DNA from: Cyanophora paradoxa CCMP329
Lineage: Eukaryota; Plantae; Glaucophyta
Length of the DNA stretch: 47,208 nt
Direction: 5' to 3'
Assembly: GCA_004431415.1 (NCBI GenBank)
Contig: QPMI01000293.1
Location: 1-47,208 of the forward strand
Shown: positions 5,915 through 29,144 of the stretch, piece after piece
Position numbering within the stretch: the first letter of the stretch is position 1
Layout: each line of letters starts with the position of its first letter
Translations under genes and position numbers: made by a program
Notes under the pieces: generated by a model
Database searches by the model: none
What the model was told of the DNA's origin: nothing
The model's input: the letters and a program-made list of their open reading frames with translations, nothing else

Positions 5915-6257
5915 CCCGCCCCGCCCCCTCGAGCCCGACGCCCCGGCCCCGCCTGCCTTAAGCCCCCCCCCCCCCCCCCCCCATCCGACGAAATCTCAAG
6001 AGTCTTCAAGTGTAGCCGGCGCCAGCTGTAGCCTGGATTGCTGCGCGCTGCGTGCGGACCGAGCGCTAGCGCTGCAGTAGTAGCGCATGCAAATCATCGA
6101 AGCATTGCCTTTCGCAAATCGCGATCGCAGGCATCGGAGGAAGGTTCGTCTGGCCTGCGAAGCGAACCAACCGCAGCATTGCGAACGGCGGCCAATCATG
6201 ATCATGAGCATAGTCGCATTTGGACACACGTACTCAAAACGCAGGTCCGGGCAGGTC

Positions 6258-6262
6258 CGGGC
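6258..6262. repeat. Left target-site duplication CGGGC
   Basis: CGGGC immediately precedes TGTAGTGC at 6263 and recurs immediately after ...GCACTACA at 16402. It does not extend to 6 bp. Confidence 0.9.
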
Positions 6263-6371
6263 TGTAGTGCGCCAAATAAAATGGCGCGCCATCTTATTTT
6301 TATGGCGCACGCTTTTGAGCCATCGCAGAAAAAAAGGCGCCGGCCAGCGCAGCCGGAGCTTTGCGTTGGGG
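6263..6371 (+). repeat. Left terminal inverted repeat (~109 bp)
   Basis: TGTAGTGCGCCAAATAAAATGGCGCGCCATCTTATTTTTATGGCGCACGC...GAGCTTTGCGTTGGGG is the reverse complement of 16295-16402, with one substitution and one 1-bp indel. Confidence 0.95.
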
Positions 6372-6657
6372 AGTACTGCTAGGCTAGCTGTCGCGATCGA
6401 AATCGCCTATCATTATAGCCTACCGCCGGGCTACCGGTATAGGACCGCACTGGCGGGAAGCGGTCGGGGAGCCGCGCGCGCGCACCGAGCCCGAAGGCGC
6501 GGCCCTAGGCACATCAGCAATGAGGTGGTGGGAGCATCCAGATGTCAGAGACCTTCCCAACAAGTTCGAATGCAGGTGTCCACCCGCAGAGAATCTGTCC
6601 GGGCTCTGCGGCAATAACTTCCTGTGCAAGACTCTGTTTCCTAACATTCGCATCGAC

Positions 6658-9600
6658 ATGCCCAGCAACGCAGCAGCGGCATCGTCATCGCAATCGAGCA
6701 ACCAACAGCAGTCAGCACCATCGAGCGGCCAGCAGGCGCCGTCCACCTCGAGCGGACAGGCGGCGAGTTCGAGCAGTAAGCCGCGTAATCGAAAGCGGCC
6801 AAATACTAGTGAACCGCCGCGGCCGCGCGGGCGCCCTCGGAAGCAGCCACCAGCACCTGCAGCTGTGGGCGCAGATGGCGCAGCAGCTTCAGAATCACAG
6901 CCAGCAGAGGCAGCGGCTTCGAGCTCGAGCTCGAGGCAGCAACAACAAAAGAAGGGCTCGGCCGCAGCAGCCGGCAAGCGCATCGACACCACCGAATTTC
7001 GCCACCGAGTCCAGCGGATGTTCGCCGAATCCGAGGCGCTGAACCGGTCCCAGCAGCATCAGTGCAGCGCGTAACTTTCGAAGAATATCGAGCCGCTATA
7101 CAGCGTGTGAAGCCCGGAGCGGTGCTGCTATCTCGCGCCGACATCGAACACGTTAAGTACATCCTCGAAAACCCGGACGCGCCCGAGCCCAGCGGCAGCC
7201 CAGAGCATGTGAAGCGGGTGAAGAATTGGCGCGAGTTCATGAGGGGAAGTACACGCTGCGCGAGGTTCCAGATCCGACAGACAACCTGACAGCGGAGGAG
7301 CTCGCCATGCCCAACCCGCGGCCAAGGCGCAAGCTTCGGCTGGTGGTGGAGAAGCAGGTTGACAACCGCTTGAAGCGAGGAAATTCGGGCGACGCCCCCC
7401 ACTGGGCAGGGAGCTGGTGTGTGACGAGGACATTTTCATCTGCATCCAGGTGCGATCGCGGTACAACGCAATTCTCTGCGCACGCGCAACGCATCTTCAA
7501 CGCAAGCGTTGGGTTGCTAGCGTTGGACATTCTCAACACATGCGTTGACCATGCGTTGAACAGAATACATTTTAATTTTTATGTCCACTGCATTGCACTG
7601 TTTGTGACGCGGTCATGATCGTGCGCAGCGCGAACACCTTGAGAGCGGGCACAAAGGTGGCACCGGTGTATACAACAATGCGAAGCAAAGGTACGCGATT
7701 CCTCGCTACCTGGTCCGCATCTACGTCAAGATTTGGTGAGTTTTCTGTCCACCGACAAACCAATCGTGACTAAGACTCACCTGCGGTCGTGGGGATGGGG
7801 CTGCAGTCCAGTCTGCAAGCTCAAGAACAAGAGGAGGCAGCCCGACGGGATCCTCCATCCAATCAAGGTGATTGGTTTCTGGGATCGGGCAATTGTCGAC
7901 TTCTTTGAGATGCCCAAGGCATGGGGCCCCTGCCCCGCATGGTGAGATGTTGTTATTGATGCGCCTGGCCGCGTGTTAAAATTTACCTGGGAGTTGCAGG
8001 AGTGGCTGCCGGGTGGAAGTGGAATGAGAGCTCAGGCGAGCTCGAGAGGGTCTGGTACTGGAGCAAGCAGTGCACGTGTGCCGGTACGAGAAGAAAATCC
8101 CGGATCCCGAATTTCCGGGCTGCTACAAGACGGTCTTTGTCACGGACGTCATTCCGCGATTCTGGCATTTGTCCTGGCCATAAAGGTCAGTTTTCGGCAC
8201 GGTCATGCGCAGATTTCTGCATCCGGTAACGAACAACGGCGAACGCAGGACCACTACACTCGTTTCCTCATCTTGGAGGCTTGCGAATCAAAGTGCGCAG
8301 GCGAAGTTGCTGATCGTCTTCGCGAGAAATTTGCCTACTTCGGCGCATGCACAATCCTGTCCTGCGACAACGGATCGGAGTTCAAGAATGATGTGAAATC
8401 CCCCGTTATCTCTTGTAAACTTCAATATTAATTATGTTAACGGAGTATGGCAGATCATGAAGGTCCTTATGGCGGCCTACCCGAACTCGTCCATCGCCTA
8501 CGGGAAACCGTACACTCCAGAGCACCAGGGCTCTGTGGAGCGCGCGAACAGGGACTCGAAGCCGACGCTCGAGGCTATTTGCTACGAACGCCGGAACCAG
8601 AATGCGGAGGACTGGGCGAACTGGGCCCTAGCCATTCCCGATGTATTTAAAATCCTTTCCATACCCCATTTGAAAATTCCAAGTGCACTGATCGATGCTG
8701 GATTCTCAGGCAATGGAGTCCCACAACAGCATGAAGTTCGCGAACGGGCACAAGATGACACCCATCGAGGCCATGACCGGGCGCAGACCTTCACGAAGGC
8801 CTTTGGGAATTGAGCCACCGTCGGATCCGACAAGGCCGTACACCGAGAAGGACATTGAGGACCTCCTCGGAGTGCGCAACGGAATGTCTGCGCATCCCAA
8901 CGCATGCGTTGGTAATTGTGTTGTCAGGTTGCAAACATGGAGGAAGTGAACAGAGTGTGCGATGACATGGCGAAGTACGAAGAAGATATCGCCAACGCTC
9001 TTCTGCAGAGGGCGGAGAGCCCGCTCTTGAAGGATATCCCGGTGTTCTACGTAGTAAGTGCCGTCAATTCATTGCAAATTTTGTCGCACTCTCATCCAAC
9101 GCATTCTCAACGCATGCGTTGGACAGATCGATCAGTTTGTGCGTGCATTCGGGAATGTCCAGGCATGCGCACGGCTTGCCGTGTACAGAGACCAGATGAA
9201 GGCGTGCGCGGAGAAGCAGGGAGCAGGTCCTGTTATCTACAGTATCGGGGATCGTGTGGCCGTCCTTGTCAAACAGCTCGGCATGCACGTCCTCCTACAA
9301 GCAAGGGTACCTGGGATCGTCACAGAAGTGGTGGACGTCCCGCATGGCCTCTACACGATCAGGACGATGGCGGGTTTCATTGACACTCCCATTCAGGGAG
9401 CACAATTGATCAACATGAACCTCGTGGGCGGTACGTGCAGGGGTAGTCCCATTTGCACGAATGTTGCACACTCATCAAAAAACTGGTGCAGGTATGCAGA
9501 CAATCTGGAAGACAATTGAGGAGAACCGTGCGAACAACATAATGAACGGCACCGTTCCTCTCATGACAGCATTCAAGAGCTTCTGTGGCCAGGCCCCCGG

Positions 9601-10974
9601 TCTCGACGTGGACCCGTGCAAGTGCAGGGATGGCTGCCTTCCAGAGAAATGCGGCTGTTTCACAAGCGGCCTGGTGTGCTGCTCGAGCTGCCAGTGCAGC
9701 AAGTACGGGTGCAAGAACAAGCGTGAGCGCATCTACCCGGAGACGGCCAGTGTCGGGGAGAAAATCATTCCGCGCCAGCGTGGCGCAACGGCAGAATCGA
9801 TCGTCGCCGACAATGCAACAGCAGATGGCCCTGTCGACGACAAGTACGGCCCATCCCGTCTGTTGATGGGATACGACGGGTGCGTTTTTGTAGCAACGCA
9901 AAGCACACGTTTGCGTTCTTCAATTCAACGCTTGCGGTGCAGTTGCGTTGGACTTCCTCTTCTAATTTCCTTTTTCTCGCAGCTTCTGGCCCCTGGCATG
10001 CACACCACCAACAAGCCCTGCAGGCATTCCTCCGTGCTGCAAACCTGCCGCACACAGGTAACAAGGAGGCTCTCAAGCTGCGAATTCTAGCTTATCTCAA
10101 GAAAGAGGAGGAGGATGCCGCTCAGCGTGCAGCCCAAGCAGCCGCAGCACGTGCAGCCCAAGCAGCCACAGCCCACGCTCCGGCCCCACCCGCCCCGTCT
10201 ACTGCTGCGGCCCCGCCTGCCCATCTCCTGCTGCGGGCCCGCCCGGCCGTCCCGCGCTCCTGCCCGCCCGCCCCGTCTCCTGCTGCGGCCCCGCCCGCCC
10301 GTCTCCTGCTGCGACCCCGCCCGGCCCGTCCCGCGCTCCGGCCCGCCCGCCCGTCTCCTGCTGCGGCCCGCCGCCCGTCTCCTGCTGCGGCCCCGCCCGG
10401 CCTGTCCCGCGCTCCGGCCCCGCCGCCCGTCTCCTGCTGCGGCCCGCCCGCCCCGTCTCCTGCTGCGGCCCCGCCCGGCCCGGCCGTGCTGCGGCTCCGC
10501 CCGGCCCACGCCGCCACCTCTGCCGCACTATGCACCTGGGTGGTGCTGCCCCTGTTGGGTCAGCCCAATTGCGAGGGGTCTTGGCCCAGTCCCAGGGGCG
10601 GTTCCGTTATTGGTCCCCACTCCCTCTGGGCCGTCTTTCTCTTCTTCTACCCTGCCATCCTCTGGATCCAGCTCTCCCATTCGTGGGCCAGTTCGAGTTG
10701 GGCCCGCACCTCGGGACACACACGGGGTGCCTGTCCTCCCCAACTCCGGGCCAAGTTACACGCAGGCAGAGCTTGAAGCCGCCTTGGCAGCACCATGTTA
10801 CCCACTAGCCCTCAGTCTAGGCTAGCTATGTCCTCGAGCCCTGTGCGCCCAGTTATGCCCCCGGCACCCAGCATGGAGCAGCAGATGCAGCAGATGCAGC
10901 AGATGATGCAGCACTTTCAGATGATGATGCAGACATTCCAGCAGAATATGGCCAACACTAGGCATGGTGTATGA
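6658..10974 (+). CDS. Transposase: retroviral-type integrase (KRBA2/SCAND3-like) with AT-hook, HHCC, DDE core, SH3-like, CXC Cys cluster, SAP, Pro-rich and Q/M-rich tail
   Basis: Motifs in order: RPRGRPRK; EHLESGHKGG...KICPVC; RAIVDFFEMP; QDHYTRFLILEA...FGACTILSCDNGSEFKN; GKPYTPEHQGSVERANR; YSIGDRVAV; CKCRDGCLPEKCGCFTSGLVCCSSCQCSKYGCKN; LQAFLRAANLPHTGNKEALKLRILAYL; ends MEQQMQQMQQMMQ...HGV*. About 10 introns and several homopolymer frameshifts. An alternative in-frame ATG lies at 6520. Confidence 0.9.
10185..10505 (+). repeat. GC-rich minisatellite in transposase C-terminal exon
   Basis: Repeated (ccgcccgccc)cgtctcctgctgcggccc units interleaved with cggcc(c/t)gtcccgcgctcc, encoding PAPSPAAAPP-like repeats. 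Confidence 0.85.
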
Positions 10975-11308
10975 AGTGTTTGTCAGAAATTTGCTTGAAA
11001 GGGAACTGACAGAGATGCGAAAATTGAAAGGAACTGAGAGAGGGAACCGGGTGTGCAACGGAAACGCAACGCATGCGTTGGGAATGCGTTGTGTCCTGCC
11101 AGGCTGCATGCAGCGCGCGCTCGGCTGGGGCGTGTCTTATACATATATACTCTTCTTCTTCTTTAGGAATCATGTACTATAATTTATACTTTATTGCTAC
11201 TACTACTATACTTTATTGATACTACATTCATTGTCATAGTACAATTTTAGATCTTGAACACGACTATAGCTAGTCTACTTGTGTGCGTGCGTTTCAAGAA
11301 CCCTGGCT

Positions 11309-11496
11309 GTAGTTCGCTTTAAGAACCAGACTAATGTGCTTCATGACTCATAATCGTAGTTCGACATTAGAACCGGACTACTAAGCTTCATGACTCATGA
11401 TCGTAGTTCGACTTTAGAACCGGACTACTAAGCTTCATGACTCATGATCGTAGTTCAACTTTAGAACCCGACTAGTTAGCCTCATGACTCATGATC
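11309..11496. repeat. Four tandem copies of a 47-bp unit in the spacer between the two convergent transposon genes
   Basis: Unit gtagttcgactttagaaccggactactaagcttcatgactcatgatc starts at 11309, 11356, 11403 and 11450. The outer copies are more diverged and there are no spacers. Confidence 0.92.
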
Positions 11497-11859
11497 GTTG
11501 GACGCATGATTGTAGTACAAATCTGAGAACTCTAGAATACTACAAATTGCTTCAGAGCTTCTCGAGTACTTGTCTAGTACTTGTGACTACAGATCTAGTC
11601 ACTGAGTTACCTACTAAACTCATCCTTCGAGTTCGAGCGGCCAAATCCTTTGAATTTCCATCCCACTCGACTAAGCAGTATCCACTTCACTGTGAGCACG
11701 TCCAGCCTGCCCACACTTCAACTTTCATCCCCATCAGTACCACAAGTACGACTTGTAAAGTAAGACTTGTAAATTGTGCAGAGAACACAAGCTGACTCAG
11801 TGAAGCAGTTGCACAATGGCTACTTTCTGCACATTAATCTACTTCTACTTCAACAGAAT

Positions 11860-14800
11860 CTACTTCTTGAGCATGAAGATGTCCCACTTGTGCCACCAGT
11901 TGTCCTTGCCCTCCACTGTTCCCTCGTTGAAGTCCGATATTTCGCCACGCAGCGGCCGCGGGTGTGGCCGGTACGAGATAGAACGGCGGAAGGTCCTGCG
12001 ATCCTCCACCTTTCCTACAGTGACCGCGGGGCCATTCCGAAGTGCAAAAGTCATCTCGCCCTCGGCGTCCGTCTCCTCGTGCTGCATCCAACACGTGAGC
12101 AGCGGAAACGCAACGCATGCATTGGAATTGCGTAGTTACCTGCAGGGCTAGGAAGAGTTCGTACTCGGCATCCCAATCGAGCTCTACCTGAGCGTACTGC
12201 ACGTAGTAAACCGTGGATGTGTCGAAGTGCAGGACGCGCCCGGGTGCCTGTCCGTATGCTGTCTTGGACTGGTCGAATGGCACGAGGATGGTGTGTTCTC
12301 TCTCCGTACTCCTCCTGCCGCGAACCACGAGACGCGTTCGTGGCTCGAGATCGAAATGCGGCGGCCATCGCAGCTTGAGAACTGTTTTCACGATCTGTTT
12401 CCGTCCGTTCCAGATGTGCGTTGCACCTCATCTGCGAGGGCCTTCTTGGAAATGCGGCCCCCACCAGGTGCCACAAAATCGGGTGAGGCCTCAACGCGTG
12501 GTTCACATCTCTGCCAAGACGTGTAAGTAATAACGCAATGCCCACAAAATATGCCGTTGCACGCACACAACACCGCCGCCGTCTTCCGGAGACGGCTGGA
12601 CATACAGCTTTTTGTCCGTTCTGCATTTGAAACACGGCAACGCAATATCAACGTTAGCGCTGGAAAAGCGTTGTGTAAGCGTTGAAAAGTTATGCTCGCC
12701 TCAGAATGGGTCTCGAGAGTTGCGGGCGGGCATCCTCTGCGGCTCCTTCTGCGACGTTCAACCTGCAGACATTATCTGAATATTTTGTGACGTGAATGGG
12801 GCATTGCATACCGCGTGGGAGTGCTGCAGGTTCGGACAGCGTCTAGAAATGTGTCATCGACGGCGACGGGGACGACTTCACGCTTGCCCCGTTTCCTGCC
12901 ACCGTCATCCTGTTTGACTGGCTGAAATATGTATGGCGTCATATATTGGACAACCTCGTCCCCCTGTTTAATGGCGGCCCCGATGATGATGGGGTCATCC
13001 CGCGGCCACTCAATGACCACAACGAGGGGGCCTCCCCCCGACGATGTCTCCGCTGCGAGACGGGGTTCGAGCTGGGCGTACTTGTGCGTGTTGCACAGCC
13101 TCCAGGGGTGCGACGTCACCCCTGGTTGGTGATCCCATACCGCAACAACTTGCTCCGAGCCCGGAGGGAGGTCGTCGTTGGGCTTTGTGAAGCACAGATA
13201 CGACGACTTCGCATCGTATGCACTTATGTGCTCTTGTTCGCGGATGAAGTGCTGAGCACGACTGAGACTGAGAGGTTTCTCCGTTCTGATTTACAACAAC
13301 GCTACATCAACGTATGTACAACGCAAGCGTTGAGTATGCGTTGCAATGCTATGCTCGCCTGAGAAAGGGTTTGGATGAAAGCTCCAGGATCGAGCCGCCG
13401 TCTGTAGAGTTCGAGCTGCACATGTATAATTACAGTCTGATTTATTACAGTACCGATTGTATAATAATTTGCGAGGACTGCCCGTGCGCACCCGGTTTCC
13501 TGGTTTACGTAGGCCAACCGGCCCCGGGCGGGAGGGAGTATCTTGGGGGCGAGTGGACTCTCTCCGCCTGACTTGGCTTTTGCGCGCTCTGCCTTGCTGC
13601 GAAGCTGCCGAAAGCTGCTCTGCTTTCCAGGATTGAGAAGCTTGGGAAGGGGCGGCAGCTGTCGGGGATTTGGGATTATTGGCTCCGCCGCCAGCTCATA
13701 TGCAGCCTTCCTCTTCTTTCGGCTCTTCTCTGCAGGCGCCTCTGCCAGCTTCTCCGCTGCCACCGCCTTGTCCTTCTCCTTCAACTTCTTCTCGGCCGCC
13801 TTCTGCGCTGCGTGATTAGAACTCTTTCCTATGCCAGGCGCTCGCACAGAGTGACGCGAAAAACTGCACCCTCTCCTGTGCTGCCGCGGCAGCCTCTGCC
13901 TGCGCCTTCGTTTTCGCGGCCTCCTTCTCGGCTGCAGCCTTCTTTGCTGCCGCCGCCTTCTCCTTCTCCTTCGCTTTCTTCTCGGCCTCCTTCTGCGCTG
14001 CGTTATTAAAACTGTTCCCCAGGCCCGGAACGCTCGCAGAGAGTGCCGCGCAACACTGCACCTTTTCCTGTGCTGCTGCCTGCTCCGCCGTTTTTGCGGC
14101 CTGCTTTTCTGCTGCGGCCTTCTTCGCTGCCGCCGCCTTGCCCTTCTCCTTCGATTCGCCTCGGCCTCCTTCTGTGCTGCGGTATTAAAACTCTGCACTA
14201 TGCCCGGGACTGGCACAGATTGCGTTTTTAAGACTGCACCTTCTCTGTCATTGCTGCGGCCTTGGGCTTCTTCGCCTCCTTCTCCATCTCCTTCTCCTGC
14301 TTCTTGCGCTTCCCTGCTTTCTGCTTTTCCTGCTTCGCCTCCTGACCCTTCGTCTCTGCCTTGCGGTTGCGCTTCCTCGAGCTTGCCGCCTCTGCGTCCT
14401 CGTCCTCGTCCTCGCCCTCGTCCTCGCCCTCGTCCTCGTCCTCATTCCCGCTCTCGTTGTCGTCCTCGAGCTTGTCCTCTACGTCATCCTCCTCGTCGGA
14501 CTCTGCGGGCACGGAATCAACGAAAATTGCGCTGTATCTTTGCAACGCAATCAACCAACGCAATACCAACGCTTGCGTTTTCGATGCGTTGTGCATGCGT
14601 TGTACACATTGCGCACCTTCGTCTGTCGGGGGGGCGCGGACGCGTGCCTTGCCCTTCTGCTCTGCCACTTTCCTTGCCGGCTCTGCAAGTGCAAAAGTGC
14701 GCGTGAGCCTTGTGCCAACACGGAGGGAAGTTGATTACGTCAACACTATTCATCGTATGTCAATCAACGTATGCGTTGAGAGGTGTTGAAATATGCGTTG

Positions 14801-16178
14801 GGATTGCGTTGGAACAGCGTCGCGTACCTTCGCACGAGTCGTGATGTTCGATTTCCTGCTTCTTCTTGCAATTGGCCTTCCTCTTCGCCCCGGTCGCCTT
14901 GTACCTGCGTGGTAAATTGTTTCCACCGGTCAGTTTCGTATGTGTTGCTCGAAATAATGGAACTCTTGCTCACTCTCCGCTGTCCACCTTGTCCTTGCCA
15001 TCCATCCAGCCGGCTACGTTCTCCTCCATCGCCGTCAGCTTGTGAGTCCCTAGGATGAAGTCGGCGACATCCAGAATGCCGGGTCGCGAGATGCCCTCAA
15101 GCTTGTAGTGGTCGTCCGGCACCTCCTGCTCCGCTTTCCTCATCCTTAGAATGCACAGTCTGTTCGGAGTGTACGCATCAGGGGCGTGGCATCGTTGCCC
15201 CATCTTCAACGCACGCACATGTTCTCAATGTTATGAAAATAGATCTCTTTCTTGCATCTCGTGAGGGATTGAAGGTGGCTGAGGTCCTTCTTGTCGAATG
15301 GGGTGAGCAGCGGCCGCAGTCTGCTCAGCGTGTCGTGCGTTTTGCGGGTGCCGCCCCCGCACTTCTGCATCCGCGAGAGAGCGTGAGCTCGAGATATAAA
15401 CTTAAATTCTAGCTCGATAACTGAAATGAAGGGACGGCACCTTCAGAAACAGCCAGGCTCGCGGGCATGTCTCCGGAGTGTACTCCCCCCCCGATCCCTC
15501 GATCGGCTCGTCCCACAGTAGCCGCACGACGTCCCGTGCCGTGTTGCAGTCCCAGTGCCGCGCTTGCCATCCGTGTCCTCCTTCAGGTAGTTCGCGCCTG
15601 TCGCCGCCCTCTTCTTTGCTCGAGGTTCACCTGCAGAGGCGAGCGCAGCTCCGACGGATGTCTGGACCTGCAAGCGCAACACCTCCACGAGCGAACTCAG
15701 CTGCGCCGAGTCCGACGAAGTCGCCGCCTGAACCGGCTGCTGCGCCTTGCCGCGCTTCATGAGCTTCACAAGTTCGGGGTCGGCGTTGCTGTCGCCGTCC
15801 TCGTGCGCTGGCTGCATGTCCCGCCGCACGACGTAGAAGAAACATCCGGGACTGAGCTTCGGCAGCTTCCGAGACGCAGTCCTCAGATCGAGGGTGTCCG
15901 CCTCCGGATCGTAGAAGTACAGGTCCAGGCCCGCAGGTCCGACGGATTGCGTGAAGCGGAGCTGCCGCTCCGCATCCTTCATGAGCTCCGCAGGCCATCC
16001 CGTGCCTCCCTCGACCTCGATGGTCACCGTCGCTGCGTCACGGGCAAGGTGCACGCGCGGTCGGGCATCATGATCAGCGCGGCGCCCGGTGCGCGCCTTC
16101 GCATCACAGCTCAAGAGTATCGAACCTTTGGTCGTAGTAAGGCCCTTGCTTGGCCACTTTGCCCTTCTTGGGCGCCAT
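11860..16178 (-). CDS. Transposon ORF2: large multi-exon protein of unknown function (N-terminal domain, acidic tract, K/A/E-rich repeats, C-terminal globular region)
   Basis: Starts MAPKKGKVAK at 16178. Most exons join in phase (e.g. HDSCE|EPARK, TDE|ESDEEDD, ETG|SNSTDGG, PFLR|TEKPL, PILR|TDKKL, LALQ|HEETD). Ends WWHKWDIFMLKK* at 11860. No family recognised. A few joins need indel correction and the join near 15200-15290 is unresolved. Confidence 0.7.
13803..14290 (-). repeat. Three tandem exon+intron units (~180-190 bp) in ORF2
   Basis: Three homologous phase-0 introns (gtgcagt...taat..cgcagc(g/a)cag; e.g. 13803-13869), each followed by a KEAE/KAAE-type K/A/E exon. Confidence 0.85.
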
Positions 16179-16294
16179 GTGCGGACCGCCCCGCCCGCTG
16201 CCGCAGTGCTGTCTGCCGGCTGCTGCTGTGCGCACTACCTACTAGCCTAGTAGTATAGTACTATTGCATCATACGCTGCGAGTCGTAGTAACCC

Positions 16295-16402
16295 CCCCAA
16301 CGCAAGCTCCGGCTGCGCTGGCCGGCGCATTTTTTTCTGCGATGGCTCAAAAGCGTGCGCCATAAAAATAAGATGGCGCGCCATTTTATTTGGCGCACTA
16401 CA
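16295..16402 (-). repeat. Right terminal inverted repeat (~108 bp)
   Basis: Ends ...CCATTTTATTTGGCGCACTACA, an inverted copy of 6263-6371. Confidence 0.95.
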
Positions 16403-16407
16403 CGGGC
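16403..16407. repeat. Right target-site duplication CGGGC
   Basis: Identical to 6258-6262. Confidence 0.9.
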
Positions 16408-16880
16408 TAAGACCAGAAAACGCGGAACCAGTGTTAAAAAATAAACAATTTTTGGAGAATTTTATGGCAAAAGTTAGAATTACGGAAGAACAAGCAAAAC
16501 TAATAAAAGAGAAAGCTAGAGCAAGAGCTGCGCGATAAAATGTCTGAATTAAATGAGTTAATGGAAGTTATTACAAATCGCTTCCATTCAGGTCTTGCAA
16601 GTTGCGAACGAAGTGGTTTCGGTTACCGGTACCAGACCGGCTCCATAAGCGTCCTTCGGGATCGGCGACCTGCCGCTGCGCTGGCCATGCCTGCAGGAGC
16701 ATAGCTGCAGCTATTTTTGAGCGCGAGGGCCCGTAGAAGTAGATAGCAGAGCTGCAGCAAGATTCAGGAAGCCGGGCGCCGGCGCGCGCGAGGCCTAGGC
16801 GTGCCCCGATTCATTGGGAGGCCTGAGTGGAGATCCGCGTCCGTCCGCTTCATTTCTCGCTGTTGCGAGGTAGCTGCATC

Positions 16881-28358: not shown

Positions 28359-29144
28359 CCAGCTTCGAAGTTTCTCGCTGGCATGTAGCGCCGGCATTCT
28401 CTTGAATCGATCTCTCTCGCCTACGCGAGCGCCCCCCTCCTCGAGGGCGGCCGCGCCCTCACGGGCGCGCGCCGCCATCGCGAACATGTATACGTGAGCA
28501 GGCCGAAGGCAGGAGCTGGCGGCCGCGGGCCGGCGCGGGGGTAGCGATCGCGACCTGGCGGAGTTGCAGCTGGCGCGGGGGCCGCAGGGGGGCGGTCGAC
28601 GTCCGGATCCGGAGAAGAGGACCGGGCCCGGAGGCGGCGGCCGAGCCTCGGAGCTCGAGTGGGCCCGGCCCTCCTGGCGCTCCGAGGCTCGCGATCGGGG
28701 GTTCCTTCGCCGACGAGCTCTCGAGGCCGCCTCCTTCCATGCCACCTTCCGCCCCTAGCTTCGAATTCGCGTGCATGCGTTGCAATTGGTGGAGAGCGTC
28801 CCAGCTGCAGCTGGCATCTGCAAGACCCCATGGCCATCTCTTTCCACCTGGGGGGGCAATCGGGGGATACACGTGCACGGCACGCATCTCGAAATTTGAA
28901 GACAGCAAGCGACTTCGACGCGCGATCGCGTAGCCCGAATCAAGTATATTCTTCGGCGGTGGCGTGTGCGTCTACCAGCTTGCGTCACGACGAGTGTAGG
29001 CCGCGGGTGAAACACTGCGCTATTCGAACGCGCCCCAACTACCGAACGCGAGCGCCTCGCGCCCTAGCGCTCTTTCGATTCCCTCCTCTCAGCGCCCGAG
29101 CGCGGGTTCGTTCATCGACGAATGCTGATGCACTTGACACGCTG

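Follow-up and report, generated by a model that had tools for sequence, protein, structure and literature searches.

Ten clusters of a short palindromic motif, all built on the same plan, were found in the non-coding DNA of a 10.1-kb cut-and-paste transposon that occupies positions 6263-16402 of contig QPMI01000293.1 from the glaucophyte Cyanophora paradoxa CCMP329 (assembly GCA_004431415.1; the 47,208-nt stretch analyzed is referred to as the window). The element carries two convergent, intron-rich genes, namely gene 1, which reads as a transposase, and gene 2 (ORF2), which encodes an orphan protein. The clusters are made of the half-site CAACGC and its complement GCGTTG, and they are more regular than was described in a previous reading of this DNA made without database searches (the sequence-only reading). 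There is, in our judgement, about an even chance that they are arrays of double-stranded DNA (dsDNA) sites for a sequence-specific protein binding as a head-to-head dimer, a protein that would probably be encoded by the element itself.

Abundance and location of the motif

CAACGC/GCGTTG was the commonest hexamer of the element, with 42 copies against the 8.3 ± 3.0 expected from second-order Markov simulations, while the other 37 kb of the window held 14 half-sites (20.3 ± 4.4 expected). The latter were solitary and never clustered (e.g. those at 28777 and 36381), in agreement with the isolated half-sites noted in host DNA by the sequence-only reading. Host windows of at most 65% GC (4.5 kb) contained a single half-site, so that within this window the motif is not general to AT-richer DNA, and a general property of low-GC sequence was dropped as an explanation.

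The complete 14-mer CAACGCWWGCGTTG occurred five times without mismatch (7498, 8898, 9108, 11067 and 13319), compared to 0.00 times in dinucleotide shuffles of the window. When up to two mismatches were allowed, the window contained 12 occurrences (0.39 in shuffles), 11 of which lie inside the element. Copies with one mismatch were located at 7534, 12111, 14567 and 14765, and all nine palindromes previously listed are present where they had been placed (five exact and four with one mismatch, the one at 8897-8912 being a perfect 16-mer); two additional palindromes, at 9926 and 12649, have one and two mismatches, respectively. The reported concentrations of half-sites at 9890-9950, 12635-12685, 14540-14605 and 14790-14812 were recovered as well, as was the half-site CCAACGCAA at the inner end of each terminal inverted repeat (TIR), located at 6363-6368, where it reads GCGTTG, and at 16298-16303.

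The non-coding third of the element (~3.3 kb, ~33%) held 36 of the 42 half-sites (binomial p = 2e-12), and the six exonic half-sites were all isolated. At the scale of the window, both the comparison inside versus outside the element (42 vs. 14) and that of non-coding versus coding DNA went in the direction anticipated by the sequence-only reading, and they support a motif that is, within the window, specific to the element and confined to its introns, its spacer and the inner edges of its TIRs. Seven clusters (B, C, F, H, I, J and K; Table 1) fall in introns that are removed in the independently made Augustus/BRAKER models of other copies of the element. Gene models of C. paradoxa were obtained with BRAKER1/Augustus trained on RNA-seq data, in a genome with 67.6% GC, 9.2 introns per gene and a mean intron length of 86 bp (PMC6704402).

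Architecture and kinship of the clusters

A central CAACGC-WW-GCGTTG with at most one mismatch per half was present in all ten clusters, which are distributed at about one per kb over the central 7.3 kb of the element (7464-14811), at least 1.2 kb away from either end. Among neighbouring exact half-sites within 40 nt (F, CAACGC; R, GCGTTG), the successions FF, FR and RR were observed 7, 8 and 9 times, respectively, and RF was never observed (0), meaning that half-sites meet head-to-head and never tail-to-tail. Half-sites of the same orientation were spaced by 11 nt (nine cases) or 22 nt (three cases), and the spacing from F to R was 8, 19 or 30 nt. When one mismatch was allowed, offsets -11 and +19 were each occupied in six of the ten clusters, +30 in three and -22 in two, while out-of-register offsets were almost never occupied. 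The extended half-site is approximately CAACGCAW, and each half-site contains a CpG. Array size ranged from two to seven half-sites, and no repeats were reported at the clusters by Tandem Repeats Finder.

For eight of the ten clusters, mutual similarity was limited to the motif array itself. Shared flanks were detected in two pairs, E/F (55 nt at 82%) and H/I (~50 nt at ~82%). Clusters H and I retain a common 41-nt frame in which the middle unit lies in opposite orientation, a difference that represents turnover of a unit within a conserved register. Their introns both begin with GCGAGC (GC-AG type), each after an exon of ~20 amino acids (aa), and the resemblance points to a local duplication inside ORF2. 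Several half-sites were found to be decayed, some of them through CpG-to-TpG/CpA changes.

A dimeric protein as candidate binder

Based on the enrichment of the motif, its non-coding location, the architecture of the arrays and the lack of a base-pairing constraint described below, we infer that the clusters are bound by a protein. A dimer would bind the 14-bp core CAACGC-WW-GCGTTG head-to-head, and cooperative binding would extend from there to additional half-sites on both sides, at a distance of one helical turn (11 bp). The confinement of the arrays to introns and spacer would reflect that no other part of the sequence is free to accommodate them. The binder would most likely be element-encoded, either the orphan ORF2 protein or an accessory domain of the transposase; by analogy, ORF2 in this role would fit the split between transposase and accessory protein in En/Spm and VANDAL elements. 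Once bound, the DNA of the element would be marked and compacted, which could serve end synapsis, control of the two convergent genes or protection from silencing by CpG methylation. Given that the body of each TIR carries a different word and a palindrome of its own, the CAACGC system looks separate from end recognition.

In C. paradoxa, 32% of CpGs and most repeats are methylated (PMC12344493), which, together with the CpG in each half-site, makes an anti-silencing role possible. A more specific proposal, in which self-recognition would have evolved independently and ORF2 would bind the arrays in the introns and at the TIR edges and either block CpG methylation, in the manner of VANC, or compact the element against self-insertion by its integrase, appears unlikely. 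The sequence-only reading had proposed that an element-encoded protein (ORF2, or the CXC/SAP region of the transposase) coats the element through these sites; the arrays are indeed built like sites for a protein, yet nothing links ORF2, the CXC/SAP region or anti-silencing to them.

Several observations weigh against the proposed dimer sites. All ten clusters may go back to a common ancestor, as E and F, and likewise H and I, clearly do, so that their polarity and phasing do not count as ten independent observations; furthermore, one copy of the element supplied all the arrays that were compared. Clusters are missing from about half of the introns, among them the one at 9431-9491 and five introns of gene 1 located between 7738 and 8708, so that the earlier description of the motif as "seeded through" the introns holds only in part. 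Searches of Pfam and PDB revealed no sequence-specific DNA-binding domain in ORF2, and the CXC and SAP matches of the transposase are under the Pfam threshold. Palindromic arrays are equally compatible with the geometry of hairpins, a period of 11 nt would match the pitch of A-form RNA as well, and two of the array segments folded better than shuffled sequences (z = -3.0 and -4.1).

Alternative explanations

Alternatively, the arrays could attract a transcription factor or chromatin protein of the host and act as intragenic enhancers or insulators, gathered by the element, that secure expression in a very GC-rich, gene-dense genome, although we consider this quite improbable. Phasing and polarity would fit a host factor equally well, the half-site resembles the Myb-type core YAACKG, and the lack of a recognised sequence-specific DNA-binding domain in the element's products agrees with a binder supplied by the host. 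However, the 37 kb of host DNA contain, if anything, fewer copies of the motif than expected and no clusters of it, whereas sites for a host factor would be expected near host promoters too; the half-sites at the edges of both TIRs, moreover, hint at a function connected with the ends of the element.

An equally low probability is assigned to arrays devoid of function, in which a palindromic unit would have spread by local duplication, slippage or gene conversion and would have survived where coding constraint is absent. The flanks shared by E/F and by H/I indicate that duplication does happen, and the decayed half-sites and motif-free introns are in line with the absence of selection. Nevertheless, eight clusters have only the motif in common, register and polarity were retained while the spacers varied, and the turnover seen between H and I took place within a fixed frame. 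Moreover, no mutational process is known that would scatter a phased palindrome into ten introns of two opposed genes over 7 kb.

The least probable of the explanations weighed is that the arrays act in pre-mRNA, as small hairpins affecting splicing or intron retention or feeding a small-RNA pathway; hairpins regulating splicing had been offered as an alternative in the sequence-only reading. Nine of the ten clusters are intronic and the tenth lies in a likely 3' untranslated region (UTR), CAACGC/GCGUUG pairing is possible in every cluster, the palindromes read alike on both strands, and one array makes up nearly the entire intron 8871-8926. Folding of the ten segments as RNA gave z-scores that were all negative (-0.7 to -4.1), with the two already mentioned at or below -3, but most lay between -1 and -2, as any palindrome gives. 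Complementarity between the 5-nt spacers that a hairpin would place opposite one another amounted to 15 of 50 positions, which corresponds to chance level. In the alignment of eleven arrays, no pair of the central helix had changed on both sides, four of its six pairs were broken without compensation in one or two clusters, and the covariation score was matched by 44 of 500 shuffles. No Rfam match was obtained for the array segments, and the position of the clusters within introns was variable (central, 5' or 3'). A hairpin would also allow the R-then-F succession, which was not observed, and would leave the half-sites at the TIR edges unexplained. Moreover, Dicer-type processing requires longer stems than the 5-6 bp available here.

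Judged by these comparisons, the segments do not appear to be under the base-pair conservation that characterizes a conserved structured RNA. Recognition of dsDNA by a dimer is favoured because the spacers are non-complementary, broken pairs are not compensated, folding is modest, the RF succession never occurs and the position within introns varies; spacer, compensation and polarity thus all speak against the hairpins suggested earlier.

Other candidates were discarded: an introner- or MITE-like (miniature inverted-repeat transposable element) insert, as similarity ends at the array except in the two pairs and no terminal repeats or duplications were seen by eye at the intron borders; a branch-point or splice signal, as the position within the intron is not fixed; and an RY/Sph element or an Rbfox-type GCAUG site, as the center of the palindrome varies (AT, AA, TT or TA), Rbfox being, to our knowledge, confined to animals.

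The element and its genes

Coordinates of the element's ends, genes and clusters are given in Table 1. The interval assigned to the transposon by the sequence-only reading (6360-16305) was too short, as the element extends from TIR to TIR. In 1-kb windows, GC content was ~72-83% across most of the window and ~55% in the 10-kb island formed by the element. The immediate flanks (6087-6262 and 16403-16830) had ~57-60% GC in surroundings of ~80% GC, and, given these lower values, the insertion may have occurred within an intergenic stretch or an older repeat. Each TIR contains a 26-nt imperfect palindrome of its own, centered on GGCGCGCC (6274-6299 and 16366-16391), as well as about four GGCGC[G/A]C-like words, unlike the CAACGC motif; it is probably by this palindrome and these words that the transposase recognises the ends. 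A 47-nt tandem repeat (4 copies, 90% matches) occupies 11309-11498, in the AT-rich spacer between the convergent genes.

Table 1. Positions of the features of the transposon in the window. Lower-case f and r denote degenerate half-sites; the last column gives the models of other copies from which the intron holding the cluster is removed, with the residues on either side of the junction.
Feature	Positions	Strand	Location or basis	Description	Intron removed in
Left target-site duplication	6258-6262			CGGGC, 5 bp, identical to 16403-16407	
Left TIR	6263-6374	+	repeat search	112 nt, starts with TGTAG, 94% complementary to 16291-16402	
Gene 1	6658-10974	+	three-frame reading	putative integrase-type transposase, ~10 introns	
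Cluster A	7464-7558		gene-1 intron 7450-7627	7 exact half-sites, two 14-mers (7498, 7534)	
Cluster B	8876-8922		fills 56-nt gene-1 intron 8871-8926	perfect 16-mer 8897-8912, degenerate half-sites at -22 and +19	P0001 (...DLLG/VANMEE...)
Cluster C	9097-9121		gene-1 intron 9053-9126, ends 5 nt ahead of acceptor	F-F-R	P0001 (...VFYV/IDQF...)
Cluster D	9894-9950		gene-1 intron 9880-9982		
Cluster E	11056-11091		~85 nt past gene-1 stop, 3' UTR or central spacer	f-F-R-R	
Gene 2 (ORF2)	11860-16178	-	exon reading and database gene models	orphan protein of ~1100 aa	
Cluster F	12100-12135		gene-2 intron 12141-12083	partly decayed, one exact and four 1-mismatch half-sites	P0003, P0004, P0009 (...LALQ/HEETD...)
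Cluster H	12638-12684		gene-2 GC-AG intron 12704-12618	F f r R R, 11-nt register	P0003, P0004 (...PILR/TDKK...)
Cluster I	13297-13343		gene-2 GC-AG intron 13360-13287	F f F R R, register as in H	P0009 (...KPFLR/TEKPL...)
Cluster J	14543-14602		gene-2 intron 14617-14505	5 exact half-sites	P0009 (...PTDE/ESDEE...)
Cluster K	14765-14811		gene-2 intron 14826-14684	central 14-mer with one mismatch, R at +30 and +41	P0009
Right TIR	16291-16402	-		half-site CAACGC at inner edge, 16298-16303	
Right target-site duplication	16403-16407		direct sequence reading	CGGGC, 5 bp	

In gene 1, an AT-hook, an H..H/C..C zinc finger, a D-D-E core and a GPY/F-like exon were recognised by eye in the exons, followed by a CXC cysteine cluster (~9600-9720), a SAP motif (~10020-10100) and a Pro-rich repeat tail, the latter encoded by tandem repeats of 26/78-nt units (10172-10507). 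Exons were searched singly, and the spliced proteins used were the models returned by the databases (P0001 and P0003-P0009). Pfam searches of separate exons matched rve (E = 0.0026) and rve_3 (E = 0.071), both under the gathering score, and SAP (E = 5.6e-5) together with weak TCR/CSRNP_N matches, just short of the cut-offs; integrase cores from PDB matched weakly (E = 0.046). From these features, we read the product as a transposase resembling Gypsy integrases. Among 1.84 billion representative proteins, exon 9127-9429 gave a single strong match (P0001, 99% identity) in addition to one weak repeat protein. P0001 corresponds to EukProt C. paradoxa tig00001128_g7192.t1, a spliced model of 8713-9880. 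No homologues of the transposase exon 8457-8810 were found in the protein database search. Apparent 1-nt frameshifts were noted in gene 1 (~7240, ~7400 and ~8170) and in gene 2 (15551); at least two of them (~7400 and 15551) fall at homopolymer runs, and P0009, which derives from another copy, is uninterrupted at 15551. They may reflect either decay of the copy in the window or homopolymer errors of a long-read assembly.

The ORF2 protein combines an acidic run, K/A/E-rich repeats of ~60 aa and beta-rich C-terminal parts, and looks chromatin-associated from its composition; tandem repeats of 180-190 nt at 13742-14220 encode the K/A/E-rich stretches. Searches with gene-2 exons returned the Cyanophora models P0003, P0004, P0005, P0006, P0008 and P0009 from other contigs, and the spliced models P0003, P0004, P0005, P0008 and P0009 mapped to gene 2 with 87-100% identity. 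No Pfam match was obtained with the exons or with model P0009, nor was any sequence match found in PDB. AlphaFold predictions of two parts of ORF2 had low confidence (pLDDT, predicted local distance difference test, of 52.7 and 38.2), and Foldseek searches with the model returned generic beta-sandwich matches, none of them at E <= 0.001, which were considered unusable. The final 25 residues of P0009 (tig00000769; residues 1100-1124) map to 6474-6548 on the minus strand, near the left end of the element; the P0009 copy may have lost the transposase gene by deletion, unless the model is an artefact of Augustus. Members of the database cluster of P0005 in ENA were bacterial SoxD-operon fragments, and this clustering was rejected as spurious.

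The element is multi-copy in C. paradoxa, judging from exon searches that match Cyanophora gene models from other contigs. Members of the family lie on tig00001128, tig00021720, tig00021127, tig00000769, tig00000219 and tig00001376, among others, and P0005 (about 90% identity in ORF2) stands for a diverged subfamily. No further copies or fragments were detected inside the window with blastn or tblastx, a contig search found no contigs encoding P0001 or P0003, and a metagenome scan with the tip of the TIR yielded 0 matches. Scanning metagenomes for CAACGC-N5-CAACGC-WW-GCGTTG resulted in 9 matches, about the number expected by chance. Three marine metagenome contigs with two clusters each (L002, L005 and L007) were set aside as carrying unrelated bacterial direct repeats: in them, a CAACGC-N5-CAACGC direct repeat flanks a segment of ~215 nt, similar to the 3' half of a tRNA, which adjoins a tyrosine-recombinase-like open reading frame of 569 aa, and the repeat is probably the attachment repeat of an integrative element.

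Comparison with known systems

One of the closest known systems is VANDAL21/VANC21 of Arabidopsis (Hosaka et al. 2017, PMC5735166), which had also been invoked by the sequence-only reading. In both cases a short motif is enriched in the element family and rare elsewhere (here, within the window), it reaches high local density, mostly in introns and in the intergenic and terminal non-coding DNA of the element, an accessory gene stands beside the transposase gene, and the host methylates transposons. VANC motifs, however, form tandem arrays of the same orientation (PMC5735166), whereas those of Cyanophora are short, palindromic, head-to-head and phased by 11 nt; in addition, the Cyanophora element is of the integrase type instead of Mutator-like, and its ORF2 belongs to no Pfam family. 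The analogy therefore holds for the enrichment in the element's own non-coding DNA but not for tandem organization, and the arrays are better regarded as an analogue, not a member, of the VANC system.

The second parallel previously drawn was with TnpA of the CACTA transposon En/Spm. The TnpA motif is short, reiterated and present in both orientations, and it is bound as a dimer by an accessory protein of the element; it is distinct from the terminal sequence recognised by the transposase and has been linked to synapsis of the ends and to release from methylation. TnpA motifs are subterminal, lying within a few hundred bases of the ends, while in Cyanophora each TIR has one half-site and the arrays are interior, in the central 7.3 kb; the transposase superfamily differs as well. 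With its clusters at 7464-14811, the element lacks the subterminal concentration that this parallel would call for, which makes it imperfect. The role of TnpA as a regulator has been discussed elsewhere (bioRxiv 10.64898/2026.08.24.746577).

As regards the element itself, several features are shared with Ginger1 transposons (PMC2836005): termini of the form TGTNR (TGTAG at both ends here), TIRs of 40-270 bp (112 nt here), and a GC-rich target. Further domains follow C-terminally in gene 1, as they do in Ginger1 transposases, and the Gypsy-integrase-like combination of a zinc finger, a DDE core and a GPY/F-like motif is visible by eye in its exons, for which the Pfam and PDB matches to integrase cores are weak. 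On the other hand, the target-site duplication is 5 bp (CGGGC, from one insertion) instead of the 4 bp (CCGG or CCGT) of Ginger1, the element measures 10.1 kb instead of 2.6-7 kb, it has two convergent genes instead of one, and gene 1 alone contains ~10 introns compared to 0-4. Its tail carries CXC and SAP, with OTU/Ulp1 absent from the Pfam results (OTU/Ulp1/PHD in the tail of Ginger1), its host is a glaucophyte and not an animal, and internal motif arrays are undescribed for Ginger1 (PMC2836005). By sequence, the element can be called Ginger-like on account of its ends, TIR length and putative integrase; it departs from Ginger1 in duplication, second gene, introns and tail. No literature linking Ginger1 with Cyanophora was found in the searched library.

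Significance

Most demonstrations that a transposon marks itself sequence-specifically, through motifs in its non-coding DNA, come from the plant systems VANC (Mutator-like) and TnpA (CACTA). If the arrays described here are bound as proposed, a palindromic, helically phased version of this strategy in an integrase-type element of a glaucophyte, a lineage that methylates its repeats, would suggest that the strategy arises repeatedly. A 14-bp site and two candidate proteins make up a compact pair that can be tested, and the element, as a Ginger-like transposon of Archaeplastida with two intron-rich genes, is also interesting in its own right.

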